A stretch of 64,000 nt of DNA. Source: Chlorokybus atmophyticus. Lineage: Eukaryota; Plantae; Mesostigma and Chlorokybus algae. The position numbers and the translations under genes are program-made. Below are positions 21,915-59,370 of this stretch, one piece after another. Location of the stretch: contig RHPI01001715.1 of assembly GCA_009103225.1 (NCBI GenBank), forward strand, positions 1 to 64,000, in the 5' to 3' direction. Position 1 is the first letter of the stretch. Each line of letters begins with the position of its first letter. The notes under the pieces were generated by a model, which was not told the origin of the DNA, made no database searches, and was given only the letters and a program-made list of their open reading frames with translations.

Positions 21915-22114
21915 CACGTGTACTTGTCTCACTACTCTGAGTTTGGAGCATATCAGTCAGATAGGCATTGCTAATCGTATGCTAAGACTTTTGCATGTGG
22001 ACGTGTACAATGGGCAGCTGTCACTGCACAACTGTCACCACAATCGAATGTGCCATGCAACATTCAACAATTAGTCCGGCGTGTGGCATTAAGCATCAAT
22101 ACAGTGCACCACAC

Positions 22115-23663: not shown

Positions 23664-24312
23664 TTTCTTCGAGCTTCCACAGAATCAGCTCGACGTGCCG
23701 TATGACATACAGCCACTGCCAGCCAAAGCATGCCAAGTACAGCTCGAATGGTTTTACTTGCCACCCAGTATGTTTGCTCAGGTAGTGGCACACATCTCGA
23801 CCCGCATTAGTCAACATCGACAGGTATATCTGCTGCAGCAGGTCGAACTTCCGCTCCGCAAATAGCTCTTGCACATTGCCGGGTTGCTGCGGCAGCAACA
23901 GCACCATCATATCGAGGACGGCAAGGGGCAACAACGTACTACGGATGGCCATATCGTGTATGGGTTCCAACCACGGCCAATCCCCAGAGGTCTGTTTAGA
24001 CCGCATTCTCCACGTTTGCTCCCACTTATTGCAAACTTTCGTCACCCACCTCGAGGCATGCCGCATGCGGTGATGCAGCGCGTCTTGGGCGTACTGTAGG
24101 GTGATCAACTCCTTTGCACTACGAGTCAGCCCCCCAAAGCGTCTGCGCGTCGGTGCTTTGAGCTTAGGCAGCTCGTGCCGCACCGGCTGTCTCTCTGGGC
24201 GATGCTGAGCAGCTACTTGACGCTGTAAACCCGCCTGTGCCTACTCAGGACACACAGTCAGCCCCAGTGAGGCTTCAAGGCGCTGTGCTTCTTCTAATGT
24301 TGTAACGATGCC

Positions 24313-27240
24313 TCACCTTTCCTTTTTTGGTCCTGTCAGCGTCCTTTGTTCCAACAACCTTCTTTTTTTTTTTTTGTCACCCTGCACATCCTGGCAGGCG
24401 CTCTCCGTGGCACTGTCACTCAGAGGAGGTAAGGCGTTATCTTCTTGCTCCACAGCCTTGCGCTTGTTGGTTGCCTCCCGTTCCTCCACGACCTCATGTT
24501 GCTTCATGAGGTCGAGCATGAAGCCTTTGTCTTTCAGCGCAGCTTTCAGGACACCTCGATCAATCTCTTTACCAACAAGACAGGCTGGGATCAATGTGGC
24601 AAGCTTAGAGGGAGAGGGCGAGCTACAGCTGCTTCTTGATGGAGATGCCTCCGGATGGTCAGAGTGCGGTGGCAAGTGAGTCTCCGCGGCAGGAAGGGAG
24701 GGTGCTGAATTGGGATTGCGAGCATGTGGCTGTGGTTGAGGGGAGGCAGGATGTGCAGAACACTCGGCTACTTCTTGCCTAGCACACGAAGGCGAGGCCT
24801 GAGGCGTTGGCGCAGCACTCTGGGTCACAGCCGGTGGTAGCGGGGAATTGGCAACGCCATTCCGCCACTCTCCGATCAGGTGTGTTACCTCCGGTGGCAC
24901 TTCATGCATAGGCCACGACCACTGTTCGGTGCTTGCAGGCTTGAGGAGCCAAAAGTGTGCTTCTGGCTCATCAGAAGCAGTGTTGCCCACCACCAGGACT
25001 GAGTTGGGGGCTTCTTTATTTCCAACCCACACTGCGCTGCCGGGCCGTGGCACCCACTCCCCATGCTCGCGCTGAACGGTCACGCAGCCAATCAACAAGC
25101 CCAGCTTGTTGGCAAACATGGTCATCTGCAGGTGCTCGACGTACACATCTTTTCTCCGCACGATCTGTCGCACCTTGGCCATGGCTAGGTCAATGTTGCA
25201 GTTGATATCAGCCAACATGGTCGCAGGCAGTTTGTCGTAATACTGCGCCATCTCTCCCGCGGCACCAGTGGCTCTGCAGAAGTCTAGAATTCTGCTCGCC
25301 ACGCCTGCATCGACAGCCTTAGCGGTGATTTTGCGGAGAGTGTGCCCCCTGTCGTCGTCGTCCATGGTGTCCAGCATGGCCCAAAATCTGCTCGAGCTGG
25401 GGCACTTGTGATCATCCAGGACACTTTGCGCTATGGATGGCCTGGCGCGAAATACACAATGGTAGAAGCAATTACCACCCGCTGGCGCATTGAAGTGGTC
25501 CCATGAGGCGAGCTGGCCACCTAGCATGACTGATGGCCGTATGCGGGTTGCGGCCAGCTCCTCTGATGACTCGCTGGCAGGTGGTGACCCCTGCTGCATG
25601 CGCATACAGCACTGACATGGTGTGTCCAACTGTGGACGGCAAGAGTCACAGTGACTGATAAAGTACCTGAGTTTGGGGCAGACTGCCGGCTTCAACTTGC
25701 AGCGGGTGGGGTAAGGTAGGTGCAGAAGCCACATCGGTTGTTGCATTGTGCTGTGGTCTCGCCGGTGGCGGCAAGAAGGATTGTTGCCCCGCAATCACCG
25801 GTGCTGCTCGTGGAGGAGATGGCAGTGCACGAAGGACTGGTGCCGCGGAAGGTGGTTGCGCTCTGGCTGGGAGGGGAGCAGGAGCTGCAGGTGAGACCAC
25901 TTGTACATGCAGCAAGGGGGGCTGTATACAGGACCCAGGATAAGATGGCTCACAATGTTGCAACAGGACGAATATAAGCTTATGCAGTGCCTGACGCATT
26001 GTTACCAAGGCACGAGCATAAAAGACAACGACTTACCTCAATGGTCCGTGGGCTGCATGGAGCAGGGGAAGCCATGGGGGCTGACAAGGTGGTATTGGCT
26101 GCACTCTCCCCGCCACCCTCGATGGCAGACTCGTCACGGAGCTCGTGAGCCATGGGCACATCATGCGCCACTGCCCCAATGGACATGTCGGGATTCAACA
26201 GGCCAACATGCATGTTAAACTGATGCCGCATTGCCGCCGCGCCCATCAGCAAGTGGGATTGAAGGACCAGTTGATGGGATTGAATCCAGGCTTGCATAGG
26301 AGCTCCAACAGGACCTAGTGCACTGTGGTGCTGTCAACCAATTACATGTGGGTTAGCTGCATGCTTGCGACACTGCAAATGCAATAGTCAACTGCGTCAC
26401 ACCGTTAGCAGTTGGTTGCTTCGAACAGTCACCTGCAGCATTGCTGCTTGATGCACGAATGATTGCATGGACTGCGTCATTGCTGGTTGATGCACTATTG
26501 GTTGAATGCCGGACGAATGGCCACGCGCTCCTGTGCTCAAGCCCAGCCTACTTCGTTTGGCACGCGCGCGCGCCTTCGCACGCTTACGCACATCCTAGCA
26601 TGCAAAGGTAGGCATGCATTGGAGCCGACATTGCAGTCAACATGCACAACGCGATTGGCAACAACATACCGCCGCCAAGCTCTGTCTATCTGCTCTTGCT
26701 TCCGCAATGTCGGCTTGACTGTAAGGTGGGTATGGGTGAATGGAGGCCTGCAGCCACACTACATATATCACATGGACTGCGCTAAAAAACAAATTGCTCT
26801 TGCAAGGAAATGCATGTGACTGTTGAGCGTACCTCTGCATTCCTTTGTGCTTGTTCCCACAGCCGCAATTGGTCCCGCATGGTTCTGACAAGGGGCTCTA
26901 AGGACTGCAGCTCTTGATCCAGTCCTTGTTGCAGAAAGCGAGCCACCAAGCAGCTCTCTGTGTGAAGATGGTCTTTAATGGCTTGCCTGCTGGTTTGTCC
27001 AATGTTGGTGATGCATGTTGGACAGCCCCATTGCTGACGCCTGCCACGATCCATAACGTGGCGACCGGTAGTAGCTGGCTTCGCTGCTTGAACTCTTACG
27101 ACCACAACTTCTCGCAAGATGTGCCACGCCGCCGCCGCCGCCGCTGCCTCCTCCGACTCCTGGTCCTCTGCCTCCTAGTCGAACCCAGGCCCATCAAGCC
27201 TGACATTCGACCCGTCATCGACCTGGTGCCCCTGCGTGCC
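24313..27240 (-). CDS. OTU-family cysteine protease (deubiquitinase-like) gene, copy A, multi-exon; may continue through 23700-24250
   Basis: OTU core ~24945-25500: FNAPAGGNCFYHCV (DGNCFY in copy B), LRKITAKAV, VYVEHLQMTMFANKLGLLI, His box EAHFWLLKP; upstream WGCPTCITNIGQTSRQAIKDHLHTESC (Zn-finger-like, ~26950-27030); downstream KRK/KKKKRR basic motifs. Exon structure 5' of 25800 uncertain. Confidence 0.7.
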
Positions 27241-27681
27241 ATCATCCGGCCATCAATGAAGCGTGTTTGGGTGAGTGCACGCTAACTCCCATTTGGGCTG
27301 ATCGAGTAATGCCTCTGTCGTACCATGGATGGTATGACAGAGCCATTGTACGGCAATCGCTGGGGTTGGACGAGAGATGCCTATGTCGTATCATAAATGT
27401 TACAACACAACTATTCGTACAACCATTGTTACCAATGGTTGTACGAAGCATGGATGGCACGAATGCATAAGTCGTACCATCAAGTATTAGTCGTACCATC
27501 AACCATAGGAGCAAGGACGCACTACAAGTGCGACTCTAGTGCGGGACTCTAAACGTTCAAAACCGCCTCATTTTCGTTTTCGCGCCTCGTACATTCGGGC
27601 GGGCCAACCGGCAGCGGCAGCGTTGGAGGCGGCAGCGCCACTATCAGCTAAACAGGCGGCACCCGACTATCAGTTGGAGAG

Positions 27682-29526
27682 ATGCCTCGTGGTCCATCCG
27701 TAAGTGCACCTCGTCGTGGAGGTCGGCGCCAGTTGTCCACATTGCCCCCAGTGTTCAACCAGGCAACCGTCGCCAACCAATCGCAGCAAGACCCCGCGCT
27801 AAGGCCCAGCACATTACAACAACTCCACCTGACACCGCAGTCGCAAGGGCAAGCTAGAATGCATGCGTTCTTGATGCACTGTGCACGTTGCTTCTTGCTC
27901 AACTTCTAACTTAGATGCTTGCTTCTTTCATGACTAGCACAGTGACTCACTACATGCGTTCTGGATACACTGTGCACGTTGTTCTTCTTTTGCAACTGTG
28001 AGGGTTGCATCTTTTATGGCTGGCAGCATGACTCATGTGGTTGTGCTTGCAGAGGGTCGATTGGAACCCCCAACCTCAACGCATTTGGCCGTGACGTGGC
28101 AACCTCGGCTGTCAGCAACCCTTCCCCAAGCAATTGGAAGATTGGCAACGAGGTAAGCACTGTGTGACACTGTGACACTGTGTGTATGCGTGTAACGGAT
28201 TGTTCTTCTGTGGACAGCATTTGCGAGATGCCGTCGTCAAAATCATAAACGGCCACTGGGTAGAGAGCCACGTTTATCCCAAGGAGGACACTATTCGTAA
28301 CGTCATGTGTCAGGTGCTATGAATGCTTCATGACCGCACTGCACCGTGACACTGACCAACCTGCCCGTAACAGGTAGTTGGCTTCGACCATGACAACGAG
28401 GCCGATGCGGCCAACTTCTATGAGGTGTACTGGACTCCCAAGGAGTGCCCCTTCCACTGGAGTGTCGCCCTGAAGAAAGCTACGCAGGTCCGGTCTGAGA
28501 ACGTCACCAAGATCAAGCATGTCCTTAAGAAGGAGTACAGGTGGACACTGTTTAACAGCGACAAGCGCAAGTGAGTTGGGTCCCTCACCACCATGTCTGC
28601 TATGCAACACTACCTTCTTACTCAGCCTCCATACACACGTACTCATCTCGCCTATTGTAACCGATTCAATCAGGCACATCGACGCCCTAATGGACCCCGA
28701 GACCCAAAAAGCCCAGATGCGCAACGCGCTCCAAAGTAAGTCACAGGCACTATTCTAGCCTGGTGCAGGCTCAACTTGAACTATCTATTTCGTGACTAAT
28801 GCCTTGTCGGTATGACTGTCGCAGACAAGTCATGGCGGAGATTGGAGGTGACCGACACTGCAGACCCGGAGCGGAGGAGATACATCCATGAATGGGGCAA
28901 TCCCATAATCTGGCAAATGATCGTGCAATGCTGGTCTTATGCCGTCACTACACCTGGTCGCCGGCAGCTGAAAGTCAACCACCTCGCATACCTGTTGCTT
29001 ACGGTGAGCACTTTGAACTCCATCATTTGCTAATGATGGAGTTCAGCAATTCAGGAATGCTGTAGCCCCAAACTACAGGCTTGCAGACGCGTTGCAGTGA
29101 ATATTGGCTTTCGATGCCACTAAGACATGCCTGTAAACTACGCAGGTGGAGCGCATCCTAAAGGGCAAGGATGGAGACCCTCTCCTAGCTCCCAGCATAG
29201 ACACACATGAAGAGTACCTCAGCGAAATCAACACCATGATCATGTCAATGAAGCGGGAGATGAGGCAACGGTACGCAGCCCTCCAGCCATTCACCCTTGT
29301 GAAACGCCGCACTGCATCTTGTGTCAAATACCTGAAAGATCCCAATCGGCGCCGGCCGCAAGAGACAGCAGCTCGTGACCCGCTCGCTGAGGCAGAAGCG
29401 GCATTTGATTGGCTGGCACAACCGTTTGAGGAGGAAGAGCAAGCTCCGGCGTCTCCTCCACAGGCCCCAGCGCGTGGTGCTTTGTTCCGTAATGACGAGA
29501 CCAGCGATGATGGAGAGGAGCTGTAG
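27682..29526 (+). CDS. Uncharacterised multi-exon passenger gene of the Plavaka element, copy A
   Basis: GT-AG-bounded open exons: HLRDAVVKIINGHWVESHVYPKEDTIRNVMCQ, VVGFDHDNEADAANFYEVYWTPKECPFHWSVALKKATQ, HIDALMDPETQKAQMRNALQ, KSWRRLEVTD..EWGNPIIWQMIVQCW, VERILKGKDG...SDDGEEL* (TAG 29524-29526); divergent from the OTU gene; no family recognised. Confidence 0.6.
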
Positions 29527-29904
29527 CGCAGTTGGTAGTCCGTTTAGCTGGTAGTGTACATAGCTACAAGGCTCTTGTGACTGAGTGTTGTGCATCTTAA
29601 ACCAGCTCAGTCAATCGTCATTATTCTCATGCACATCAGTACTTGCATCCCTATGATGTACAACGGAACTGCATTCGAGTCACATAATCAAACTACAAGC
29701 CTTGGGAAGTGACTGAGAGACACTGTACACATTTCAGGTACATGTACACAGCACAGGCACATAATAATGCTGGAAGTCAGTGACAGTCGCGTGTAGTCAA
29801 GCTATGCAAATACATATGACGACAGTTAGGCATTAGTCACCTTCAGTTGTTAAAGAATGCCTTTATTTTTGTCGATAATTACCTAGTTGGTGCTTGTGAA
29901 TTAG

Positions 29905-30200
29905 GCTTGGTCGCCTGCGCTGATCTGGTGTGTAACCTGCAGGTGCCTGTCACATAGGCTAAGTCACCTAAGTAAGACTGATGTGTAACTTACAGGTGCC
30001 CGTTGATTAGTTGTAGTCACCTAATAAGGCCTGATGTGTAACTAACAGTTGCCTGTAAATTACACAAAGTCATTTGTTAAGGCCTGATGTGTGACTAACA
30101 GGTGCCTGTTAATTATATATAGTCACCTGTTAAGGCCTGATAGGTAACTAATAGGCGCCTGTTAATTAGGCATAGTCAACTGTTAAAGACTAAATTGTAA
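29905..30200. repeat. Subterminal tandem array (~53-bp unit, ~5-6 copies), Plavaka copy A
   Basis: Unit approx. GGCCTGATGTGTAACTAACAGGTGCCTGTTAATTATATATAGTCACCTGTTAA, ending ~150 bp inside the terminus. Confidence 0.85.
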
Positions 30201-30351
30201 CAAAAAGGGCCTCATAGTAACGGAAGTTACTGTTAGGTCCCTGTATCAAGATTACAGGTGGCCTGAGCCACGACAATCTAAATTGATGTCCTCAGGTGCA
30301 CGGCCGTTGCCAATATTTAGTCGGCCGGCAGGGAAAACATATTGCGACGTG

Positions 30352-30570
30352 GTAACGATGCTCTCTCGCTTAATTACTCCGGAAATTCAAGGCATTGGGC
30401 TTAATGTCCCACGCGCTTTCTGTTGGCATGTCTAGATGTTGTGGTTGCATGACTTGATCTCTATGCGCAAAATAGCAACAGTAAGCATCTCGGCGGTGAG
30501 CAGCTTCAAAGAGCATTTGCTGAGTCTGTGCCCAGCATCGCAAGCAACTACTACTGCAGAGGGTCGTGAT
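30352..30570. repeat. Diverged dispersed repeat abutting the Plavaka A terminus (inverted homolog of 9660-9850)
   Basis: Alignment with 9660-9850 runs up to the base next to the ..GCGACGTG terminus. Confidence 0.65.
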
Positions 30571-30739
30571 TCAATAGTTTACATTGCGCACATGTGAAAA
30601 GTTCAGAACAACGACAATCGCAACTTCAACTTGTGCATGCAAGCTTACCTTGGCAATGCTCGGAGCAGGGGGCAGAGTTTCACAGCCATTGTGCAAATAC
30701 TATAAATCCCAACTCCGAACAAATATTCATTGCTTAATG

Positions 30740-30950
30740 CCAACTCCAGTGAGAAATCATTACATATTACTTTCAACTCACCAAAACACCTTGCTGTGTT
30801 TTTGATTAAGCCCTAAGAGTGAGTGAATATTCATTACCAAACCATAAACACCTGCTAGTAATTTTAACTACGTTTTAAGTGTGAGTGAATGTTCATTACC
30901 GAATCAAAAACACCTGCTAATAATTTTAACTAAATCCCAAGTGTCAATGA
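30740..30950. repeat. AT-rich tandem repeat (~61-bp unit, 2-3 copies)
   Basis: GTGAGTGAAT(A/G)TTCATTACC..A..A.AAACACCTGCTA.TAATTTTAACTA repeated from ~30820 and ~30880, with a degenerate copy upstream. Confidence 0.75.
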
Positions 30951-31249
30951 AAGATCAGGCTACTGCACTGCATTTATGCTAATAAATGTGTTTATTAATT
31001 CTATACAAATTTTTACACAAGCCGCTTAACTATAACTACCCTACTGCTCGTGCGGTTGTCAAGCCCCGTGTGGCACCTCTGCTTCCAGACCATTCATCAG
31101 TCTTTGTAGTCGTCTTCTCAAGCTGTCTGCCTCTCGAGAACAAAACCGAATACTTTAAAGCTGCGCGCCATACAACGACATGTAGTTGCTCAGCACATGT
31201 CAACCCACATGACTGTGTCATGCACGCACTTTCAACTTGAAAGCATAGC

Positions 31250-32954
31250 TGAACACTTATATCAGTTGTATCTGTTGAAATATCGGCGCGTTTTGCACGA
31301 TTAGACCAGCTTGTAGCCCATTTATAAAATTTTCCAAATAAACCATGACAAACAGCCCGCACGCAACTCTATCTTGCTGCTGAGGGACCTTCACGAGCCA
31401 GTGTGTCAACGCTTGCCAACCAAACGCATGTGCATGCATCAAATCAGGCTTGTGACAAGATGTGGGTGTAGCATCATCACTAGTGCAATGCATCGTGTGC
31501 TACCTGCGGTACAGTAAGCTAGACCTGCTCTGGAGAATATCGTCGCTGCGAGGCACTTCCATGCTTTCTGCCGCACATATAGTCAATATAAGCGCGCATG
31601 GTCTGTCAACGTTGCGATGCAAGCCAAGTGAGTCGAGATGCACGGGTAAGCGCGGTGTGTTGCTTCCAAAGTCGGTAAAGATTGCACACGAGTAGCAGGC
31701 TTCAGTGAGTCCTGTGTACACAATCAGAGTGATGCCATAGTTTTTAGCACAGCAGCAATGCAGCAAGGCATATAACCTTGACGCTTATTCTCATCGCGTA
31801 TCTGGGTTGAAAATCACTCTTAAGAAGTCCTTAACAAATGGATCACTCTCCCACCTGTCTATCCAATGATTGCTCGTGTGCCAGCTATCTTGTTCATGGC
31901 AGATTACGATCTTGGTGTAGTAATGCGGGTTAAACAACTTCATGTGAATGCTGTCAGCTCTACCCAAGAGCTCCTCTTCCCTGTGTCTGTGCGCACGTGA
32001 TACGTACATATCAGACACACGAATAACACCGACCCGAAAAACCTCATACCTGCGAAAGAAGTGGAGGATGGTATCATTGAGCACTTGTCTGCCATCCAGC
32101 AACCTTTTGTCCGTTTTGGACACTGGCACCGCATCACATGCACCAAGGTAAAATGAACAACGGCTGCGGCATTAGCGGCTGTGGGTTGCTAACAAGTCCA
32201 TCCAGCGCCATGATCTCATCATCACTGCTCACGAGGTCCACAATTGCCGCAGCCATCGCAGCTGTTGATTACAATCGTCTTCTGCATCTTCATCATCAAT
32301 TTCTATCGCGAGTGCCTTTGCAGCCATAGATGGTTCAATTACCCAATGAAGACCACAACGAAAATGCACAAGGTCACACAGCAGCTGACCGTTGTTAGCC
32401 TCATCTCCGCACTCTTCAATGCTGTCTTGACCCCCAATCTCCGTAGATGGTTGTGAAACCATACCACTGCTGCTAGGCATAGAATGACGAGCGAGACTTT
32501 TTGTTGGAGGCTGTGCAGGAGCACCCCCTTCTCCGTATGCAGCACATTGCGAGCGCATGATTTAAAGCATGCTGCCAATAGCATGCCGTCGATAGAGGCT
32601 GTTTGGGCACGTCGCACAGATTTGCAAAGCTAGTTCGTTGCAGCTCCTGACATGGCACCTATGTTCGGAAGATCACAATTGAGATCGATATTTTTTTTTG
32701 TCAGTACAGTTCAAAGCACTTGCTGCGATATTGTTCACTTACTTATGCCTAGGGCACTCCAAGTGATCACCTTCCACAGGTGGTAGTCTGACACATCGCC
32801 CGTGGTAGCTTTGCCAACAACTTTCGACATCGCAGCCGAATATGATGCCTCCATCCTTACAGACAAGCAGTGCTCTTCGTATTTTCGCTGCTAATTCATC
32901 CAGCTCCAGCCTCGGTCTCATCCTGCAAATCAATTCTCTGATTCTCCATGTCAC
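31250..32954 (-). pseudogene. PHD-C5HCH-like zinc module + Ulp1 (peptidase C48) SUMO-protease gene, decayed
   Basis: (C)LVCKDGGIIFGCDVESCWQSYHGRCVRLPPVEGDHLECPRHK|intron|CHVRSCNELALQICATCPNSLYRRH (32570-32880); Ulp1 motifs LLDGRQVLNDTILHFF, LFNPHYYTKI, PVHLDSL and VPQQQDRVACGLFVMVYLENF (31310-32130); stops and frameshifts. Confidence 0.78.
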
Positions 32955-33029
32955 ACAACAGATCGTGTATCAGGGCATCACAATTACGAAGAGTACCCCA
33001 TGTACTCAAAATGTCATGGCATGTGCTCC

Positions 33030-36000
33030 ATGACACCTCACTCGAGGCGCTGTTGCTTTTGTTTTCCCAGTATACAACCGTTTTGTATACTGGGAACCTG
33101 ACACCGAGTATACAAGACGGTTGTATGTGATGCCAAGACTAATGAAACGTAAGGACAACAAATCCATTCATGGACTAATCTGACCTCACCGGAGTGTCGC
33201 GGTGCTTGTCTCTGCGCATGAGACTGCGCCTGTCTTTTACAAGTGCTACTGTTGTTTTGTCGTTATATGGATCGATACCCTTAAACCACTAAACCTTTAC
33301 CTGCAGGCAAGCGGGCACATGTATAAGCTAATTCTGCTCTACTATCATTACTACACGCGCAAAAACAAATACAACACAACTACTTACGAGGTTGCAGTCA
33401 AGGTAGGTTGTTTATGCAAAGAGCGGCTTGTCTTTACGTAGTATGACAAAGTCCCAACGGTGCTGCACTTGCTTGCTCATGTACCACCTCGGCTTGAGTA
33501 GCTAGTGCTCCCAACCGACACTTTAATAGCAAACGATTGCACCCTGCCATACCAGTGGACCTTTTTTGGTCGGTCATCCGCCTCACGCCCAACGATGAAC
33601 ATGCCGCAGTCCATGGTGCGGAGCTTTTTGTCAGCTTCCTCAGCTCTCAACTAGCTAATATCTTTGTAACGTGCTCGGTAGTATTGCAATATGCGCTTTG
33701 AAAAGATAGGACCGCTTAACAGTTTGTGCACGTGCTTTGTAAGCTCCTTGTAAGGTCCACGCCATTGATGCCGCTCAGTCATGTGCTCCATATCACTAGT
33801 CGGCACATTCCCTTTTGCTTGAGCCCGTTCACGTGCCTTCCATCTCTTGTCCACCTCCCGGCTAAACTTTCTGAATTGCGTGACAACCCCGTTACACAAG
33901 TGTCGTATGTGATGCATTGACATACGACACAAAACAATTCCTAAAACAGCGTACTCATAGCATCTTGTACTTATCGTCATTCTTTGTCAACCACCACTCC
34001 AGCTCCTGTCTTGTCTTGCTATCCTTGGCAAACTCAACACGGTGTTTACGCCTGCAGAGCACATAGTCATCATTTCGCTCCTTGTCCGATCGAAGACTAA
34101 TATCCGAGATAATTTTCTTCAGCGAGTCCATATAAGTGTTCAACATAAGTTGTAGGGAATATTTGCAGCAATAACATGCCTTTGATGCATGTCCAACAAC
34201 GAAAACAATAGAGAAGGAGGTTGCACGAATAATATAGTTGACCCAGACAAGACTTGCCGTTGGCAGATGCTAGTTTCCACATGTTGCCCAGAAAAAATCA
34301 TCCTCTTCACCCACTGCATAAACCGTTCATGCGCCCACTCCCAGTGGTCACGCACAGAACCGAGCCACATGCATTGCTTCCGTAAGTGACTAAGCAGGTG
34401 CAGCATCATAGTGAGAGAGGTCTTCGGGAAGAACAGCTCCATCTCAAATTGTATCTCATGCACAAGCACCTGCATCGAATAATGCAAGTTGCGCATGCGA
34501 TAAAAACTTAGCATACGTACGGGAGTAATGGAGCCATTGGATAATTCAACCGCGGTTCTTTACGGTGTGAATGCTTCACCTCCAATGCTATCATCCTTTA
34601 ATAATTGTTACACAGTTTAAAGATTGTATTCTTCTGATGTTCACCTATATCTTGTGCAAAGAGCTGCACGTACTGAAAACCCACCAACCACAGGTTGTGT
34701 TTGTCGCGCGATTTTATCAAACCTATGTGTGCACTACTTTTGACTTGCTGTGTACAGCAATTCCTTATTAAGACATTCATTTGCTTCAGAAGCAGTGCTG
34801 CACCATGCCTACTGTCTCACTTAAGTGCTTCGTGAAAGATTGGAGTTTAGAGCCGAAAGTGCTTGACACTCTCACGCACGAGAGTAGTTTCTCTACCAGC
34901 CCTACATCCATGATAGCCCTACATCCATAGAGCCTGAGGTTTCACCTTGACGACTACTTCCTTTCTATCTACAACCTTCATCTCTGTCTGCAGCGCTCAG
35001 CACAACCATCATCACCCAAAGGCACAAACTGCGTGTGCACATCACACACGTCGCATAAGCTGGCCATATGTAAAGGGAAGGTACATCAATTACCACAAAT
35101 CGACTGTAAAAGCACCAAGTCTTTTGTGGTCGAGTGGTTTGTGACATTGGTCATCGGAGCTTGAGACCCGGGTTCGATTCCTGCCTCGCACACGAATTCC
35201 GCGGTCGTTGTTTCTCGATCCAATAATCGTAAATGGTCACTTTATGAGTGCCATCATCGATGGGTCGCGACTTGCCTAATGGCAGTCGCGCCGAACTGAC
35301 CAGTTTAGTCGGCGCGGCAGGGCGCGACCTGCCTATCGCGGCGACGCGACCTGTGGGGCCGGCAGCGGCGCGCTATGCGCGCGCTGACCGGTTTGGGCCT
35401 AGATTGGCCGGTCCTTGGATGGTGGGGCCGGTGACCGACCCTAAATCAGACCCCTGGGAAGATTCCCCAGCTGATGGCCGCCAGCTGCCGAGGACGTCAG
35501 CGTTCTTAAGTGGGGGAGAATGTAACGGGAAGGTACATTAATTACCACAAATCGACCATAAAAGCACCAAGTCTTTTGTGGTCGAGTGGTTTGTGACACC
35601 ATACCTCTAGCGAGAGGTCTGGCATGCGACCTTGCTACCGCAGATCTTCTCTTGTCTCGTCGCTGTCGCGCAAGCTAGCAAGCAGATTGGCCAAGTTGGT
35701 TGCCAGGGCAAAGATGTGCATGGGGCCAACCACATGACCCTTGTTGAATTGTTGTAAAAGCAGCCAATATGGAAGATTGTGATAATTGCTCAAGCCAATG
35801 ATGCTAGACGACTTGCAAAAATGTCTCTTGCAATCAATCAATTGAATGCTGGCTTTTGCGTGATGTCATCGCATACCTGTGTGTATGACATCCATTGCTT
35901 CAAGCTGTGTCACATTGCTATCTTCAGCACTATTGCTTAAGCAATGAGTTGATATTGCTTACCAATACACGCTCTCCGCAGTTCGCAATGGAGGTGCATG

Positions 36001-38590
36001 TTTGAGTTCTGGCTTGTTGCCAATGCTCGTCAGTGCGGTAAGAATGGTCATCTGGTATGCAACGATGGTAGTCTTGGTAGACTTTCTTCAGGAGGTTTAC
36101 ATGTTCTACGCGGCACTCGCATTTTTAACAGCCAAGAATGGCTCCATGCGCCATCTGCATGGCAGCTTTGGCAAGAGCTGCACAACCACAACTACATCTC
36201 AACAATCTTCATTGCGGGGTAGTTGCAAACACCTAGCTACACGAACACCAATGGCATTTCGAACCTAGACAATCGTGGATGACAATCTCCAAAATGGATC
36301 TGCACTTGAAGACTTCAACATGGTGACTGTCACATATTTCAATACCTGAACAATACCAGCAGTGTTAAAGTCCACAACCGTTGAAGATGAATGATGCTAC
36401 AACATGTGCCCAAGGCTGCCTAACTGGTCAATGATTGGCTTCACGTAAGCCTGGAGATTTTTTGGCTGCTTGGGAGCAGGTAATATTGCTGCTATAAAGG
36501 TAGTGTCCATCTTGTGCATATTTACATTTAGCAGGTTCGACACTAAAATTGTGACAACCTAAAATTCATAGTTCCTTGCAAGTCAAGAAACACCTTACTC
36601 ATTTGTACAGTCTCACACCACTTTGAGCATACGGCAAAAAACGAACTTCAATACCTTTGTGCGGATCTCTAAATGGGCTCATCTCGTTAATGAACATTGC
36701 TAGCCGTACATTGCGTGATTCTGTAGCAAACCGGTTGTAGTGTTCTTCAGTGTCCTTGAACATTGGCGAATCTGAGAGCAGCAAGGACACGCGGGGCTTA
36801 CAACCAACTGCCCCCAGCTGACCCGCCAACACATTCACACATGCACAAAAGCACCAGGCAAGGATGCTAAGGACTTACATACTGCCCCAGCATCTCACCA
36901 ACACGCTTCCGACAAACACAAACACAAACACAAGGCAGGACGCCAAGGTCTTACGTGCCGCCTCAACGTCTCACCAACACATTTATGCATGCAAAAAAGC
37001 ACAAGGCAAGAACACACACTGGGGTCTTACATGCCGCCCCAGCGTTTAACCAGCAATCCACGCACACACAAACACAAGTCCTACAGTCATAAAACAGTTG
37101 TGCCTCACTTAACATTTAACTTGTCAATGCGATTGACATATTACCGTGTGTAGATCGCATAATCCCATCCTGACTGCACTTTGTGTGCGCCGTCATCTCC
37201 GCAGCCACTGTAGGCTTCAGGTACAAAGATCTCAATGCAGCAGGTAAGTAAAAGTAGCGTGCAGTTTCCCATGCAACTTGTCTACCTCAAATGTTTATGT
37301 GGCGAGGTGTTTTGCAGTCTGCAAGGCATCAGTTGATTGCTCGCTCATGGGTCACACAGTGACCGTGCAACTGCAAAGGAAATGCAACAACTGCTCACCT
37401 TTGCAAAGTTTCCTCCTGACATATCCCCAATACATCATATGATCACACGTACACGCGTCGTACGCTTGGAAGCCCATGTTTAGGCTTGCAAGGCGATTCA
37501 TGACCTCTCATATGGGTCCTAGCATCTTGTTTGTCTTGGGCAAAACAACATCACGCATCAACCTGTCGCACACACCAACCACTTGGTAATTTGAACATGC
37601 ACAATGCAGCGAGGTCGTGCGTTCTATTTATAAAACTCTGCGCTAGCATCACCTCAGCACTTTGTTCATGAAGTTGAAAGGTATTCAATGTAGTTGAGCC
37701 AAGACAAGTAGCACCATGGAAATGCCCATAGGGGTTGTGCGTGAACCGGCAATAACGGGGTTAGTTGCATTGTCCAACAGCGCAGCATTCACATCGTCAA
37801 GCAGTAGTGCATCAGTACCGCGTGGATTAATTTCCTGCTCAAACTCCACATTGGTTTGGTAGTACAAATCTTGGCTAGGGTCGTCTTCAACTTGCTCAGG
37901 ATTTACTTGCTTTGCAGTTGAGGGGAAGTGCGCTTGAGTGTCAAGCGCACTTGCAGCAGTGGATTTGGTTGTGGGACCTTAATGCTCTGGCGATACTTGA
38001 TGGTGCCCTTCCCCATCATCATTCACAGGGCGTCCTACAGTGCACACTGCAGCAAACGGCACATGAACAATATGCAAAGCTAGCAATGATGAACATACAT
38101 ATGGAGTCAGTTCATACCTCTTGGGTGTAAGTGTGCCTGAGATTTGCAATAAGATGCAACGCTTGTTTGCAATGGCGTGGCTGGTTTAAGGTAAGAAGTT
38201 ACATAAATCCCCGCATGAAGTTGCTGAGTAACCTTTCGGATGTCAGCTAAAACATGCAAAGTTTGTCATTAGCCTGTTGATTTCATAAAGGGAGCCGCAT
38301 TATGTGATGTATTACCTGACATCATGATGGATGATGCAGCAGCAACAGCAGCATCAGCTTCTACAAATTTTTCAGGAGGAAGATAAGAACGGTACATCGG
38401 ACAAACAGCTTTTGGAGTTCCACTCCACATTCTAATGCCATGGTACTCTTGGTTTTCACGTCTAATAATGTGTTTATATGTCAACACTTTGCTCCCTCTG
38501 CAATCCTTGCAAAACACCTGCGGTGGTAGCTCATCTTGCAAGCTGTTGACACGAGTGAGTGTTCTGTTCCTGCAGTCAGCATGCAAAGCG
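33030..38590 (-). pseudogene. CACTA transposase (Transposase_21 / DUF4218 / DUF4216 regions), heavily decayed, interrupted by TRIM-1
   Basis: ATNPVIAGSRTT..VLPKTNKM..MGFQAYDACTCDHMMY (37400-37780); FATESRNVRLAMFINEMSPF (~36680-36740); ILPAPKQPKNLQAYVKPIIDQL (~36420-36490); MLHLLSHL..WLGSVRDHWEWAHERFMQWVK (34300-34420); KKLRTMDCG..HWYGRV (33540-33630). Confidence 0.85.
35069..35598 (+). mobile_element. TRIM-1 (530 bp; 78-bp LTRs)
   Basis: LTRs 35069-35146 and 35521-35598 (TGTAA..GTGACA); PBS-like TTGGTCATCGGAGC 35147-35160; PPT AGTGGGGGAGAA before the 3' LTR; TSD CCATA both sides; no coding capacity. Confidence 0.93.
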
Positions 38591-38849
38591 CAAAGGCACC
38601 ACCGATGATGCCGCTGCCGCTGCCTTTTCGCACTTCTCGGCGCAAGTGTGATAAGGGTTTAAATCGATACAACTCAGATCAAGCCCCGAGTCCAATCCGG
38701 ATGTGCTCCGAAATTTGCGTACCTACTCCTTTTTTTCTTCCATGCATTAGCTATTAGGGTTTGTGTGGCAGGTAGCGTGGCGGCAAAATGCTCGGCGGCA
38801 AAGTGTGCAATTTCCGCAAAGCATACTTGGTTAGGAACGTCAACTTCAA

Positions 38850-39890
38850 GCGATTGCGTCAGCATGAAGATAAGTGCAAGCTAGTCAGTGACCAGTATGG
38901 CCCATGATGCCTGCTGGCACCACACAAGGCAAGGGGAGACAATGTGAGGCAATGCAGACTGCTGGCACGATGCATGAGGTTAGAGTTCTTTTTAGTGGAG
39001 TGCACTTGCCTGCAGTGCTCGCTGTCCAAGTTTGAGTGGGACGAAGAGCCTATGGACCACCGGCCTGGAGCATATTAGGATGGGCATGTGTGCAATGTGA
39101 TTTAACATAAACTTGCGCGCAATGGTCGCGTCAAGTCCATTGCAAGCGAAGATGTTCACAACACGGTAAGCTGAACTGTCCTTGCACGCAGGAAAACAGC
39201 ACTCCCAGACATAAACAACTCACTCGTGACTGTTAAACGGGGGATGCGGTAGTCAATGCAATTAATGTTATCATGATACTTACTGCTTGGCGGAAGGAGA
39301 TTGTTGATGAGGGGCAGTCTTTAGTAGCATGCTGCGCTGTGGTGTATTGGCCTGGGATGAGCATTTCGTGTGCAGGCCGCATCACTTTTTATGCCAACAC
39401 AGGTATATATGTTTGCATATATTGCAGAATTTTTGATGTACATGTGCGCGTTCACGCAAGCACTGGCTCGGAACCATACCATAAAGTACGACGAATATAA
39501 TGAAGACCTACGACTGCACCACATCTTGATAAAGAACTGGAACATGGTAGTTGTGCGTGAGGGTTACGACATGCAAGATGTCCATGCAGTGATGGTTCAA
39601 GTTGGTGATTAAATTTGTTTGGAACTGCAAAACATGCCTGGTCGAGAGCTCGTTGGCCCAAGCCACCACCCATTATGATAACTCGCACACCATGCGACTC
39701 AAGCGAAAGATGTTACAGGCAGCGCGCACTAGATCTCTTTTGCGGCGCTGGTGGCCATGAATATGTACGGGGCAGGGTTTGATGTTGAGAGCATCGACAA
39801 CAGGCCACAACCGTCATACCCATTCAGGTTTTGCCAGATGGAGGCAATAGACGCTGATCTGTCCGCATATGATGCAATGTGGGCATGGTG
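38850..39890 (+). pseudogene. Third, divergent Cys-rich + Tudor + phage-type C5-MTase gene (3'-truncated)
   Basis: CRLLARCMRLEFFLVECTCLQCSLSKFEWDEEPM (38953-39055); LVACCAVVYWPG..AGRITFY|phase-1 intron|..RNHTIKYDEY (39321-39500); WPKPPPIMITRTPCD..RQRALDLFCGAGG, frameshift, MYGAGFDVESIDNRPQPSYPFRF..YDAMWA (39655-39887). Confidence 0.82.
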
Positions 39891-39944
39891 ATTGTGGTTG
39901 ATGCCCAGAATGCAAGCCAGGGATGTTGCTGCTTTGGCCCGTTA

Positions 39945-40474
39945 TGTAACGGGAAGGTACATTACATTACCACAAATCGACCATAAAAGGACCAAGTCTC
40001 TTGTGGTCGAGTGGTTTGTGACATTGGTCATCGGAGCTTGAGACCCGGGTTCGATTCCTGCCTTGCACACGAATTCCGCGGTCGTTGTTTCTCGATCCAA
40101 TAACATCGTAAATGGTCACTTTATAAGTGCCATCATCGATGGGTCGCGACTTGCCTAATGGCAGTCGCGCCGAACTGACCAGTTCAGTCGGCGCGGCAGG
40201 GCGCGACCTGCCTACTGCGGCGACGCGCCCTGTGGGGCCAGCAGCGGAGCGCTATGCGCGCGCTGACCGGTATGGGCCTAGATTGGCCGGTCCTTGGGTG
40301 GTGGGGCCGGTGACCGACCCTAACAAACCCCTTGGGTAATTCCCCAGCTGACCGGGCAGCTGCCGAGGACGTCAGCGTTCTTAAGTGGGGGGGAATGTAA
40401 CGGGAAGGTACATTACGTTACCACAAATCGACCATAAAAGCACCAAGTCTTTTGTGGTCGAGTGGTTTGTGACA
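39945..40474 (+). mobile_element. TRIM-2 (530 bp; 79-bp LTRs)
   Basis: LTRs 39945-40023 and 40396-40474; same PBS, internal sequence and PPT as TRIM-1; TSD CGTTA both sides. Confidence 0.93.
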
Positions 40475-41729
40475 CGTTAGGTTACTAAAGGCTATCAAGG
40501 TGAGGAAGCAGCCAGCAAAGAAAGGCACCAGCGCACGCGGGAGGGGCCGTGGAAAGGGAAGCAGGGGGGTTGGGAAGGGCAACCGGGGCGGTCGTGGGCG
40601 ACGCAGCAGGAATTAGGCATCAGCACAGGGTAGGACATTGTGGTTGCTGCGGTACAATAAGGTAGCATACATGGCAACAATACTAAACGAGATTTGGGGC
40701 CAGCTAACATTTAGCTAACCTTATCAAAAACATTCACGGGCTTTAGCCGGATGTTGTGCAGAGTTATGCAGAGTGATGCAGAGTGATGTCAACTTCCCCA
40801 ACTCACCGCAAACAACCTTGCACTAGCAGTTAATGCAGAGAGTTTATTGCCAATATCGGCTGGTATGTTGAACGTTGCAATCAAAAGGGCGGCGGGCTGA
40901 ACAAAATGTGTATCTTTAGGTCACCCACATTGTAAGTATTTCCACCTGCATGGTTACATCTTTAGAACAAGCTACCGGTACCGGTAGCCGGTACTTATAT
41001 ACCGGTATGAATATATACAAATATACCGGTAGTGCTGATGTATGCAGCTGTTGGTGCATGCGTGGCGGAACGTGAGACAATCGAGGTAGTTGCTGTAAAG
41101 GTTATACTACTTTGAAACGCATCGCAGGGGTGTCTTGTTTCGTTTGGTCAGTCAGTACATGTCCGCGCACGTTTGAAACTCGGCGATGGAGTAGTGAACC
41201 GCCTATCATTACGATCTTTTTATATATATTTTTGCCGCAAACTGCAGCCACAATGGCCACAATGGTTGGTTTTGGTGTCAGATAAACCTGTCAACGTGCA
41301 CACATGCCATGAGCTTGGTTTACCAGGCTTGTGATGTGCTGTTTTCTTGGCTAGCAACAAGGTAGGTAAAGCGGCATTTGTATGCATGTTCTGTCCCTGT
41401 CGTTGCTTTGTCTAAGCTGGGCATGCCCCTTCAACTGCATGCCCAGCTTAGACAAGGCTGTTGCATGCAAGCATGGATGCGCAACACACACACAAGAACA
41501 CAGCAGTGCAAAGTGCATGCAATCGACAGTTGAATTGATACTAATCCCTTTAACGCGTGATCTATCCAGCAATTATTGAAGAATTTGGCCAAAACCAAGT
41601 TCAAGAATAGGCGATACCAATATTAATGCACACCTTTTAATTCACCTTAATGGCAGCTGAATACCAAATTAAATTATAACTAAGGCAAGAAAGGAGGTAG
41701 AAAACGGTACCTCGTTTGCCATTAGGTGC

Positions 41730-43515
41730 CCAACCAAGTTACAGCTGGATCTCAAACCAAGTTGTGGTCAAAGCCAGACTGTTGGGGGGCCATTTCTACC
41801 GGTGAGGCGCCGAATCCGCTGAAGATGTGCTCAAGGTACGCCCGCGTCACCGTGGATGTATTATTTAGTAACATTATCAACTCCACCCACTTGCTGAGGT
41901 GTTCGATGGCGACAAGTATGTATACGTTGTCGCGGCGTGTGATGGGCAGCTCGCCTGCAAGGTCCATGCTGCACCAATATACAAGCCCCATGATGGGCAA
42001 GGGATGCAGCTGAGGGTGGCGATGTGAAAAGCTTGCCCGGATGCAATCGCAGGACCTACACTGTCTGAATACTTCCGCGACATTGCGTGCAAGTTCGTCC
42101 CACCAATAGTCACCACGCACCATATTGGCAGTGCGATTCATGTCGAAGAACCAAAGCTGGTGATGCAAGTTAGCGATAATAGACGCCCGGCGGTTGATGG
42201 GGGAACCTCCTACACTGACCATCGCTTATGACGCGCCATGGAGCGTCATTGTCCCAGGTGTAGTTACTTGCGCGGTGCTACGCGCGGTCAGTTGTCTTTT
42301 GGTCTAGCCTAGCAGGCAGAGCCGGTCCGGTCTTAATCAGCTGCAAGCCACGCTCATTTGTCCAAATGTCCCCTTCACTTGTAGGGGGTATGGTGGCCCA
42401 GAGCATTGGGTTGCGGGCCTCCGTGCGTATGCCGGCTGCCATGACCAACTATGATGGCGCGCTTGCGAGGTGTGTTGCCGTCGTATCGGGCGTCAGTGGC
42501 GTCCACTATAGCGGGATTGGGGTTGCGACTCAAGCCATCGGCACCGGTGTTAACAATGCCTGGCTTGTGGGTAATAGTAAGGTCGTATACTTGTAGCAGC
42601 AAAGCCCAACGCGCGTGCTTGCCAGTGAGTTGATTGCTCGTGAGTAGCCACTGCAGGGGCTGGTGGTTAGTGACCTGCTCAAAATGTAGCCAAAGAGAAA
42701 TGGCCGAAAGAACTAAATGGCCCAAAAAGCACGCTGCTCCCCTCCGGGGAAGGCTTCATAGCTGCTATAGTTAGCTTCCGCCGCATTATTGCTCCTATTG
42801 GCGTAGGCAATGACTTGTTCCTTGCCTTCGCCGTTCTTCAGGCAGAGCACCGCACCCAGCCCAAGCCGGCTCCAACTGATAATGAGTATGAAGGGCTTGT
42901 TGTAGGCAGGGCGCGCCAGGATGGGAGCCGACTGCAGGTGGCCTTTCAACGCCTCTAAGGCTTGCTGCTGCTTTGCTTCACCCCAATGCCAAATGATGGC
43001 TTTCTTCAACAGGGCATTGAGGGGTTTGGCCAACGTGGAGACGTTGAGCACAAACCTTTGGTAATAGTTGGCAAGATCAAGGGAGGCAACAAGACGGGAG
43101 ATGTCCGTGGGTGGTGGCACCTTCAGCAACGCATCCATTTTTGCCTGCTGCACCAGCATTCCATTGGGGACGATGAGGTGGCCGAGATATGGAATCTTGT
43201 CACGTACACTTCTCAAGGTGTGCCGTGAGCCCGTGCTCCTTTGGTCTGTGCAACGCCTTCTTGATGTGCTGCGAGTTCGCTTTAGCAGTGTGGCTAAAGA
43301 TGAGGATGTCATCGATGTAGCACCTGAAATTGTCCAGCCCATTAAGGGTTATGTCCATTACGCGTTGGATGACAGCAGGTGCGTTCTTCAATTGAAAAGG
43401 CATAACCTTCCATTGATACAGTGTCCGCTTGCCCCAAAAAGCGGTCTTGCACTTGTCCTCCGTCTTGATGCCAATGAATCCCAGAGCGCATATCCATCAC
43501 CGAAAAGTACTTGCA
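41730..43515 (-). pseudogene. Gypsy pol, 3' part: RT, RNase H, integrase (truncated)
   Basis: MPFQLKNAPAVIQRVM..CYIDDILIFS; LQSAPILARPAYNKPFIL..GLGAVL..VIAYANRSNNAAEANYSSYE; YWWDELARNVAEVFRQCRSC; CSMDLAGELPITRRDNVYILVAIEHLSKWVE. Confidence 0.9.
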
Positions 43516-45303: not shown

Positions 45304-45335
<32 letters not shown>

Positions 45336-46626
45336 NNNNNNNNNNNNNNNNNNNNNNNNNNNNNNNNNNNNNNNNNNNNNNNNNNNNNNNNNNNNNNNNN
45401 NNNNNNNNNNNNNNNNNNNNNNNNNNNNNNNNNNNNNNNNNNNNNNNNNNNNNNNNNNNNNNNNNNNNNNNNNNNNNNNNNNNNNNNNNNNNNNNNNNNN
45501 NNNNNNNNNNNNNNNNNNNNNNNNNNCCCCCCCCCCCCCCCCCCCCCCCCGCCTGGTCATTCAGTGTCGGAGGAATGGCTGTTGGAAAGGTTGAGCTCTC
45601 CGCTGCAGGCGCTTGGCTACTCCCCGAGCGGAGGTTTGGCGGCGACTGCGCAGCGCTCCATGCTCTCATGCTTTCGCACTTCGAGGCAATGGGCGCCGCC
45701 GCACCAAGCTCTACATCATGCAGGTCCTGCCAGCAGACGTGGCCTCGTTGTCCATCCCGCTCACCCCGGCTCAGCGCTGGGTGTCGCTGGACGAATGGGA
45801 GCTGGCACTGAAGAACCGAGCGGCTGGCCGGACAGCCACCCTGGGTCTCACATTTCTTGCTGCTTTTCATTCATGGAGAGCGGCCCTTTTGAGAGCGCCC
45901 ACCCCATCAGGCGCGACCCCCTCGTCAAGCTCTGTTGCGCGCAGCTCGGTGGCTAGGCAACTCATTTCTCCCCCCAAGCTTGCGAGCCCGGAGCAGCCCC
46001 CGCACAGGCCCGTTTTGCCTGCCCCACACCCGGTGCAGGCCTGTGCGAGCTTCATGTCCCCGGAGAAGCCCCCCCCCGCGTGCGGTGCGCTCGGTGATGG
46101 TCGTCCTCAGATGTCAAGACGGGGAGTGGTGGCTAGGCCTTGGCAGGTGCCCCCAACCCTCTCCCACCCCCTTCGCTCTCGCAAGCTCAGAAGACGTTGC
46201 GGAGGAGCCCCACCTCCGTCACCTCGTGGCAAGGGCTTTACAACTCCCGGAAGACGCTCCGTGGGAGGAGTGGGAGGCTGCCACCAGCGTGCTGACTATG
46301 CGCATGCAAGAGGATCAGATCCAGCGCTACGTGGTCTGGGTGCTGACGGTGCCGGAATATGTACACGACAATGGTGATGGCGAGGTGGTGTGGGCGAATG
46401 TGCGTAAGCTTCCGTGGGCGGCGGGAGGGTTGGAAGCGCTGGTCGGCTCGATCACTGCGTCCGCGCTTGGCCTGTTGCGCTCGCAGGCCCCCAAGCTCCT
46501 TCCGCTGCCACGCAACGCCGACGCCTCGCTGAGGGAAGCTCTCCAGGGGGCGCCAGCGGACCCGCAGGAGATCTCCCTTGAAGAGCTGCTGGGGGTTCTC
46601 CCGCAGGGGAGCTCATCCGCAACACC

Positions 46627-46630: not shown

Positions 46631-51130
<4,500 letters not shown>

Positions 51131-51810: not shown

Positions 51811-52039
51811 TGCGCCAACATTCTTGCTCTGGTTGTAGCGTAGTGAGGGATGTCCAGTGCTTCTTCAAGTGCTTAAAGCTCGACGCCGTGAATCGCCATG
51901 GAGACGAATTGTGGGTCCCTGGTTTCTGCAGGCTCTTGCCCCCNATCACACCCCCCGCGCGTTTGGCCGAGGTGGTTAACACGGCCAATATCTGTTTCAA
52001 AGGGCCAAGCATGTCTCCAGCAATCAAATCATGTTTTGG

Positions 52040-52965
52040 GTCCATGGCTCAACCAAGCAGCTCTCGGCAATCGCATTTTGCCCGCTTGGGAGCATGTGTG
52101 ATGGCACTCGGCCAAAATCCCTTGCCAACTCGCGCTCAGTGGCCAAAGGTTTACAAAGACAGTTAAGATTGACATCCCAAACCATCCCAATGTTGCCATT
52201 GAGAAACGAATGTGAGCCTGGATATGCCACAGATGATGAGAAGGCATCCATATGACGATTAACCTTGTTGCATTGGTGAAAGTACTTGTAGTCTGGCCAA
52301 GTTAGCGATTGGGGTGTAGCAACATGAACCAATATGTCTTGCATAAATAGGCCAAGAGGCCTAACAGACAGAAGTTGCGCTGCTGTTAAGTCTTCTATCT
52401 TGGCAAAGCTTGTCCACTTGCTGCGCAACCGGTAAGCACAAGAGCCATGAGCAGCAGCGTCGATTACCACGGGTGCGTCGAGCACCGTGCAAATGTCTTT
52501 GTAGTCGGCACGCACATTGCCGTGTTGATCATCTTGAGCACAGACGTTCTCAAGAATGTATGCAGGAGGTCTGTCAGATTGCTGCTGGTAAAGTGTATGT
52601 GTGATACGAACCTACTCCCAAAACAACTTGGACCTGGAGCTTTGCAGGCTAAGTCCTTTGCCTGCGCGTGAGTGCCCTTGACATTCCCATCCGGCTACGA
52701 TGAGGTCAATCCCCCCCCCCCCGTGCCGGCAGGTGTTCCCCTATGATGAGGCGGATGTTCTAAAGCAAGGTACAGAGGCTGCTTGCAGTTACGGACGAAT
52801 GTAGCAGTGGGAACCTTTGGCGCTTCTAAAGCAGGTAGTAAGACACTGCTGTCTGTGCTTGCGGGCTCGGGTCGCAGTAGAAGTACTAATTGGGATGCCC
52901 ATGCTCAGCACAGATGCCAATCCACTGCCGACCCCTCCAAACAAAATAAACACAGTGATGCCGCT
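52040..52965 (-). pseudogene. Retrotransposon-embedded C5-cytosine methyltransferase domain, decayed
   Basis: GITVFILFGGVGSGLASVLSMGIPI (motif I, 52890-52965); IDLIVAGWECQGHSRAG (IV, ~52660-52710); PAYILENV (VI, ~52545); DAAAHGSCAYRLRSKWTSF (VIII); PLATERELA.GF..RELLG*AMD (X). Confidence 0.85.
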
Positions 52966-59143: not shown

Positions 59144-59370
59144 TGTTACAGCCCACTTGACCACAAAAGACTTGGTGCTTTTATGGTCGATTTGTGGTAA
59201 TTTGATGTACCTTCCTGTTACATTACAACAACGACCGCGGAATTCGTGTGCAAGGCAGGAATTGAACCCGGGTCTCAAGCTCCGATACCAATGTCACAGC
59301 CCACTCGACCACAAAAGACTTGGTGCTTTTATGGTCGATTTGTGGTAATTTAATGTACCTTCCCGTTACA
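59144..59370 (-). mobile_element. TRIM-3, minimal 227-bp derivative
   Basis: LTRs 59292-59370 and 59144-59222; PBS TTGGTATCGGAGC; 69-bp internal region without PPT; TSD TGAGT; empty site in copy A at ~25620. Confidence 0.92.

Follow-up and report, generated by a model that had tools for sequence, protein, structure and literature searches.

A stretch of 64,000 nucleotides of Chlorokybus atmophyticus DNA (contig RHPI01001715.1), referred to here as the window, carries at 38953-39885 on the plus strand an interval that is colinear at the protein level with a Cys-rich/Tudor-like/C5-methyltransferase gene located on a Plavaka element at 22115-23663 on the minus strand. This interval, hereafter the fragment, is probably the relic of a CACTA-lineage paralogue of that mobile accessory gene, lying next to a dead TNP2-type transposase. 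The broader proposition sees in the Tudor-like/C5-methyltransferase gene a true mobile accessory gene that has moved among DNA-transposon lineages of this alga, at least CACTA and Plavaka, and here the balance tips only slightly in favor. To this proposition the locus adds one thing, an old independent paralogue next to a transposase of a second family, and this speaks for an ancient, repeated association and against a single recent capture.

The window consists of repeat-rich eukaryotic DNA and contains a large element in two copies of opposite orientation that are 97% identical, one at 20348-30350 and the other at 64000-54457. A transposase exon of this element at 19921-20148 on the plus strand has Plavaka (PF18759) as its best Pfam match, with 21.7 bits against a cut-off of 26.3, and no Pfam match was obtained for the other exons of the Plavaka-type transposase. 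Each copy of the element carries a version of the methyltransferase gene, the one in copy 1 serving as the reference gene throughout:

22115-23663, minus strand: reference gene of Plavaka copy 1, with exons 23663-23499, 23377-23167, and 23091-22115, comprising 450 codons.
60980-62229, plus strand: the same gene in Plavaka copy 2, with exon 1 lost.

The first intron of the reference gene is 121 nt long, and a 75-nt phase-1 intron lies in its Tudor-like region. The enzyme ORF matches the Pfam DNA_methylase profile with 26.1 bits against a cut-off of 22 and keeps the motifs PPCQ, VIENV, FRHRLFE, and ANAVPP; a PDB sequence search with this ORF was blank. Judged by their lesions, both Plavaka copies of the gene in the window are disabled. 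In copy 1 the reading frame is cut short by a TAG at 22441-22439, a codon that reads GAG in copy 2 (..RLFET-stop-PVV.. versus ..RLFETEPVV..), while copy 2 has suffered a 625-bp deletion, corresponding to 23365-23989 of copy 1, that removes exon 1, as well as changes of PPCQ to PSYQ and of ENV to ENM. The two versions of the methyltransferase gene are 91% identical in protein and 97% identical in nucleotide sequence, a relationship that suggests relaxed constraint.

The homology between the fragment and the reference gene is distributed over a series of colinear pieces, which are listed below together with the intervals that separate them and the evidence for each:

38953-39075, plus strand: Cys-rich module, homologue of exon 1 (CRL..C..EFF..C.C..CS.S.FEW..EPM), from tblastn.
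39079-39165, plus strand: candidate vestiges of the last part of exon 1, of a collapsed intron 1, and of the beginning of exon 2 (GHV ... LARNGR), from short colinear matches and reading of the DNA.
39300-39402, plus strand: first half of the Tudor-like module (VVYWP....AGRI), from local alignment with the reference Tudor region.
39403-39460, plus strand: putative 58-nt GT..AG interval in phase 1, from direct reading of the DNA.
39461-39609, plus strand: second half of the Tudor-like module (H.I.YDE...), from colinearity and local alignment.
39654-39755, plus strand: linker WPKPPP..TPCD together with motif I of the methyltransferase (RALDLFCGAGG), sharing 19/35 residues with the reference.
39756, plus strand: frameshift site inside motif I, from comparison of spacing.
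39757-39885, plus strand: methyltransferase region past motif I (YGAGFDVESIDNRPQPSYPFRF...YDAMWA), 18/48 identical to the reference, with identity to family members reaching 60%.

Over the alignable residues the fragment and the reference gene are 47% identical (56/119), and no nucleotide-level similarity was found between them. An earlier sequence-only reading of this DNA had claimed homology of all three parts, and for two of them the claim is borne out by significant matches. The Cys-rich block at 38953-39054 shares 19 of 36 residues with reference residues 9-44 (tblastn E 3.6e-7), and the linker and motif I region at 39654-39885, including YGAGFDV and PQPSYPFRF, gives a joint E of 2.9e-11 against a 13.6-kb subject, or 1.5e-10 with the full window as subject. 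Taken alone, the Tudor part (39300-39402 plus 39461-39609) is weak, with a local alignment score of 33 and p 0.033 against 5000 shuffles, and is credible mainly because it is colinear between the two significant blocks. The assignment of 39079-39165 to the end of exon 1, intron 1, and the start of exon 2 is likewise tentative, this block being without significance on its own; its match of LARCGR with LARNGR covers 5 of 6 residues. The same reading had placed a phase-1 intron at the equivalent Tudor position. A phase-1 GT..AG interval does occur in both genes, although that of the fragment is putative and agrees in position with the 75-nt intron of the reference (23092-23166) only to within 1-3 residues.

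Within the enzyme part, the FxGxG SAM-binding loop of motif I of the C5 methyltransferases (PF00145) is present as DLFCGAGG at 39732-39755, followed by YGAGFDV. In a blastp comparison of the methyltransferase piece with 150 family members, all except one were matched (149/150), with E values down to 3e-19. These observations support the fragment as a true old paralogue of the three-part gene, neither a chance match nor a recent Plavaka copy.

The name Tudor for the middle module is to be read as a lead only, resting on motif resemblance and a language-model search, without Pfam support. A Pfam search with the reference ORF and the pieces of the fragment yielded no match to a Tudor-clan profile at E values up to 0.1, and in the language-model search the clusters closest to the reference region were those of the Tudor clan (PTM_DIR17_Tudor, Spin-Ssty, and Agenet), at a score of 0.75, which is at lead level. 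Comparison of the putative aromatic cage aligns HWPLDGEWYAG of the reference with YWPGMSISCAG of the fragment; the W-Y pair is gone in the latter, and the DGEWY motif of the reference is thus not retained in its Tudor-like region.

The fragment is a pseudogene, the decayed 5' half of a Cys-rich/Tudor-like/C5-methyltransferase gene. An in-frame TAG at 39076-39078 directly follows the Cys-rich block, and an in-frame TAA at 39103-39105 (..ATTTAA CAT..) occupies the place of the intron 1 acceptor CAG of the reference (..ATTCAG, then AGC..), intron 1 itself being almost wholly gone from the fragment. Further downstream, both usable frames are closed by stops, a TAA at 39610-39612 and, in the downstream frame, a TGA at 39606-39608, so that continuity needs either a frameshift or an implausibly short intron of 44 nt. 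An intron of this length bridging the stop at 39610 is unlikely, since the reference lacks an intron at this point and the remaining intervals are 58-121 nt long. Inside motif I, the spacing from GAGG to YGAGFDV is 10 nt in the fragment versus 15 in the reference and the family (as seen in members P0010, P0011, and P0015), which indicates a 5-nt frameshift.

Homology ends at 39885, where ..YDAMWA is followed by W and TGA, just before the expected motif IV (PPCQ). The catalytic Pro-Cys of motif IV (PCQ) is absent from the fragment, as are motifs VI (ENV), VIII (RxR), and IX-X, and reference residues 265-450, the remaining 40% of the protein, have no match anywhere in the window, including the sequence past the terminal-repeat element (TRIM) that lies to the right. 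Lacking the catalytic cysteine motif as well as motifs VI-X, and interrupted by several stops, the fragment could not give a product that functions as a methyltransferase. The sequence-only reading had mentioned neither the broken state of the gene nor its stop before the catalytic motif, and had spoken of a conserved system; this is not supported by the fragment, because a dead 5' half is silent on the conservation of function.

The sequence to the left of the fragment is occupied by the decayed genes of a CACTA block, both on the opposite strand:

33654-38658, minus strand: decayed CACTA/TNP2-type transposase in many ORF pieces, from Pfam and ORF order.
31039-32969, minus strand: second gene remnant of the CACTA block, from Pfam.

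The identification of the transposase relies on a DUF4218 match at 34143-34559 (34 bits against a Pfam cut-off of 27), on two Transposase_21 pieces within 36400-36874 (20.8 and 13 bits, each below the cut-off of 28.6), and on the order of the ORF pieces, which follow one another on the minus strand between 38658 and about 33650 in the manner typical of TNP2-type transposases. At 36826-37078 about three tandem 76-nt units, probably intronic or decayed sequence, separate the N-terminal ORFs of TNP2 from the pieces of Transposase_21. The second gene remnant includes an NSD-type PHD finger at 32742-32969 (PHD_NSD, 24.2 bits, cut-off 23.9) and a weak match to Ulp1 protease at 31260-31499 (Peptidase_C48, 17.3 bits, below the cut-off). 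The window holds a single CACTA copy, and a word search with the DUF4218 ORF in public protein sets, which do not include the proteins of this genome, was blank.

The upstream-most ORF of the transposase occupies 38272-38658 and the fragment starts at 38953, so the two lie head-to-head about 300-400 bp apart. Two earlier suggestions are confirmed here: with DUF4218 above threshold and this divergent spacing, the fragment is indeed head-to-head with a CACTA transposase, and the transposase beside it belongs to a family different from that of the reference gene, as the CACTA-type and Plavaka-type transposases have no BLAST match to each other. The G+C content of the fragment (0.48) agrees with that of the CACTA genes (0.45-0.48) and not with that of the Plavaka element (0.53-0.57), which places the fragment in the same old AT-enriched block as the CACTA genes.

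The boundaries of the element are less clear. The fragment had been described as lying inside a candidate CACTA end, and this was not confirmed: a comparison of 30200-31300 with 38660-41800 gave no inverted pair at or above 16/20, and CACTA and TAGTG words are present around the block with none of them pairing. More generally, no long inverted repeats, LTR pairs, or target duplications delimiting a CACTA element were found around the block, and a search for CACTA termini enclosing the gene, suggested as a check, came out negative. On the left side the CACTA block abuts the Plavaka terminus at 30350; on the right side the continuation of both the element and the gene is missing, and the right CACTA end may simply have been lost. 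The insertions recognized around and within the block are as follows:

39945-40474, plus strand: TRIM with an 80-nt terminal direct repeat and the duplication CGTTA, from repeat comparison.
35069-35598, plus strand: second TRIM, 94% identical to the first, with the duplication CCATA, within the transposase gene, from repeat comparison.
41755-43348, minus strand: Ty3/gypsy remnant (Integrase_H2C2, rve, RNase H), from Pfam.

By its own repeats and duplication, the TRIM at 39945-40474 is evidently an independent later insertion, and its role as the cause of the truncation is ruled out by the intact 5-bp duplications that both TRIMs keep. To its right follow 1.3 kb of unassigned sequence and then the Ty3/gypsy remnant, for which no LTR pair was detected and which may or may not mark the point where the CACTA element was interrupted. 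The TRIM family itself is characterized by 80-nt terminal direct repeats (TG..CA), which are 95-96% identical within each element, by a tRNA-like stretch, and by two copies of 530 bp; a third version of 228 bp, at 59144-59371, is inside Plavaka copy 2 and absent from copy 1.

Several other features of the surroundings were recorded. The 330 bp after the terminus of Plavaka copy 1 (30342-30680) have an inverted diverged paralogue 20 kb away at 9551-9869, with 65% identity by blastn, a mean column identity of 77% by MAFFT, and an abrupt boundary at 30342/9869; the Plavaka end has TTGCGACGT as its last 9 nt, which recur at this pair as TTGATACGT. A run of 191 N, either a gap or a masked stretch, lies in a poly-C tract at 45305-45550, and another poly-C tract, roughly 184 nt long, is found at 50074-50257, both within a region of LINE-like reverse transcriptase ORFs (RVT_1 48493-49032). 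Additionally, an open frame of 195 residues at 52027-52611 on the minus strand contains ..PPAYILENV.. and ..AYRLRSKW.., resembling motifs VI and VIII of C5 methyltransferases; it gave no Pfam match at E values up to 0.1, no PDB match, and no BLAST similarity to the reference gene.

The relationships of the enzyme part were explored with an exhaustive protein search using the reference enzyme ORF, which returned 3441 relatives, the best of them 47-56% identical and over the enzyme part only. The relatives found in these public protein sets, which lack this genome, are viral and prokaryote-type methyltransferases, all without a Tudor module, and scanning metagenomes with the Cys-rich alignment gave no match. 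The nearest relatives in the tree (P0003, P0004, P0005, and P0008) have a methyl-CpG-binding domain (MBD) within or just after the enzyme, and two of them, P0005 and P0008, stand in dense arrays with genes for topoisomerase II, ribonucleotide reductase, an mRNA triphosphatase, and TBP-like proteins, so that their contigs look like giant-virus contigs. The more distant relatives are phage-like. At four metagenomic loci (L001, 10001-10843; L002, 9239-10534; L003, 1064-2359; L004, 2028-3050), the enzymes closest to the catalytic domain are virus-like methyltransferases on contigs with giant-virus hallmark genes; their MBD either interrupts the enzyme between motifs VIII and IX or is the product of the adjoining gene, so that writer and reader are combined on this enzyme scaffold in another way.

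The short motif I core of the fragment is 55-60% identical to viral and bacterial homologues and only about 45% identical to the reference. From this lower core identity the reference lineage looks to be the faster-evolving one, and the pattern is to some degree also compatible with a catalytic domain that was acquired separately. A tree forcing the fragment and the reference together was not rejected (lnL +32 over the free quick tree, p-AU 0.91), although with about 60 columns for the fragment the tree support for this grouping is weak. The stronger argument for a single fused-gene origin is provided by the Cys-rich module, the Tudor-like module, the WP.P.P linker, and the intron-like interval that the two genes have in common.

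The reading as a CACTA-lineage relic has to be weighed against several other origins. The fragment might be the remnant of a separate insertion, of a diverged Plavaka-like or other carrier, that landed by chance beside the start of the CACTA transposase and was mostly deleted afterwards, and the lack of detectable CACTA ends, the survival of only half a gene, and the setting amid transposon debris, in which pieces of TRIM, Ty3/gypsy, and LINE-like type are nested, would all suit this history. It is nevertheless considered unlikely, as no Plavaka-like sequence flanks the fragment, its base composition is that of the CACTA block, and its start is set in a tidy divergent arrangement only a few hundred base pairs from the first transposase ORF. 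An origin as a decayed host gene or an endogenized giant-virus segment, not as transposon cargo, is brought to mind by the occurrence of the nearest methyltransferase relatives in giant-virus-like contigs (with topoisomerase II, ribonucleotide reductase, and mRNA capping enzyme); these viral relatives, however, have an MBD in place of Cys-rich and Tudor-like modules and no WP.P.P linker, whereas the fragment has all the extra modules and the intron-like interval in common with the transposon-borne gene, and no viral genes lie nearby, which makes such an origin very unlikely.

The order of the modules, with the reader parts first and the enzyme part missing, would also be expected of a shortened working gene in which the Cys-rich and Tudor-like reader had been domesticated without the enzyme. 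Two stops (39076-78 and 39103-05) upstream of the Tudor part, the loss of DGEWY, and the lack of any long open frame render this extremely improbable. As for a chance resemblance, the Tudor block with its p of 0.03 might by itself be dismissed in this way, but two independent colinear blocks at E 4e-7 and 3e-11, which also answer the earlier doubt about the significance of the similarity, and the matches to 149 of the 150 family members, with E to 3e-19, reduce its probability to almost nothing. The best explanation would accordingly see in the fragment the remains of the CACTA family's own accessory gene, diverging head-to-head from the transposase, with two TRIM insertions and a truncation following. 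We infer that the gene was once part of a CACTA element.

How the gene came to reside beside two transposases is a further question, for which the sequence-only reading had envisaged an old cassette, either exchanged between two lineages or co-inherited by them. The age of the relationship stands, the paralogue being 47% identical in protein and devoid of nucleotide similarity, but what the two elements have in common is a single gene and not a multi-gene cassette, since no further genes common to the Plavaka accessory region and the CACTA block were found within the window. Between the two routes, exchange or capture fits better and co-inheritance poorly: the genes are 47% identical, yet the transposases are unalignable and the arrangements differ, the gene being oriented tail-to-tail with the transposase in Plavaka and head-to-head in the CACTA block. 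The gene would thus have reached the two transposon lineages by capture or exchange and not by descent from a common ancestor, an argument that unequal evolutionary rates could blur.

For intact members of the family, a mechanism can be proposed in which the transposon makes the methyltransferase and the Tudor-like module tethers the enzyme to marked chromatin, whereupon the element's own DNA or its surroundings would be methylated. This might damp the expression of the element and lead to tolerance by the host, or it might tie transposition to the hemimethylated state just after replication. If intact copies behave in this way, DNA transposons of this lineage would write cytosine methylation themselves under the guidance of a chromatin mark, which would be relevant to the negotiation of silencing between transposons and their hosts and to the routes by which eukaryotic genomes acquire viral methyltransferases. 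The dead fragment is unusable for functional tests of these possibilities.

Compared with known systems, the CACTA block resembles plant En/Spm (CACTA) elements in having Transposase_21 and DUF4218 regions and a second gene on the same strand, and differs in that no CACTA termini or subterminal repeats were recognized. Classical En/Spm is not known to carry a methyltransferase. The small C5 methyltransferases of giant-virus type (L001-L004) are 49-54% identical to the reference and have IIPA.QR..HG..W.H..LIP and a C-terminal ..YPP..Y in common with it, but they are without Cys-rich and Tudor-like modules, have an MBD, and occur in dense virus-like arrays with no transposases beside them. A search of open-access text turned up no published account of CACTA or Plavaka elements that carry a Tudor-fused C5 methyltransferase.

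Mobile elements encoding cytosine methyltransferases have been reported among the retrotransposons of Symbiodinium and Klebsormidium, for which methylation of the element's own DNA was suggested (de Mendoza et al. 2018, PMC5890265). Those enzymes are DNMT3-type or otherwise eukaryotic-type and lie within retrotransposon ORFs, and that article makes no mention of Tudor, whereas the present enzyme is compact, of viral/phage type, and encoded by its own intron-bearing gene with DNA transposases beside it. In the red alga Bostrychia moritziana, giant Plavaka elements of 17-19 kb carry the chromatin- and DNA-modification genes PAG1-3, which are also found in other transposon families, most copies being degenerate (bioRxiv 10.1101/2025.02.11.637652). 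The PAG genes encode N6-adenine methylase/SET and ParB/2OG-oxygenase proteins, in contrast to the Tudor-fused C5 methyltransferase described here, and the two elements of the window have no further accessory genes in common.

The closest parallel is offered by the TET/JBP dioxygenase genes, which are carried by 11 fungal DNA-transposon lineages including EnSpm/CACTA and Plavaka, with inferred transfers between lineages (Kojima 2025, PMC12730594). In both cases a DNA-modification enzyme is an accessory gene on several cut-and-paste transposon lineages; the fungal cargo is an eraser of 5-methylcytosine in fungal hosts, whereas here it is a writer, a C5 methyltransferase fused to a Tudor-like module, in a copy that is dead and whose CACTA ends were not found. 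Together, the fungal TET/JBP genes and the red-algal Plavaka accessory genes provide published precedents for the transfer of accessory genes between DNA-transposon lineages, and a 5-methylcytosine writer on cut-and-paste transposons, if confirmed, would be the mirror image of the fungal eraser cargo.
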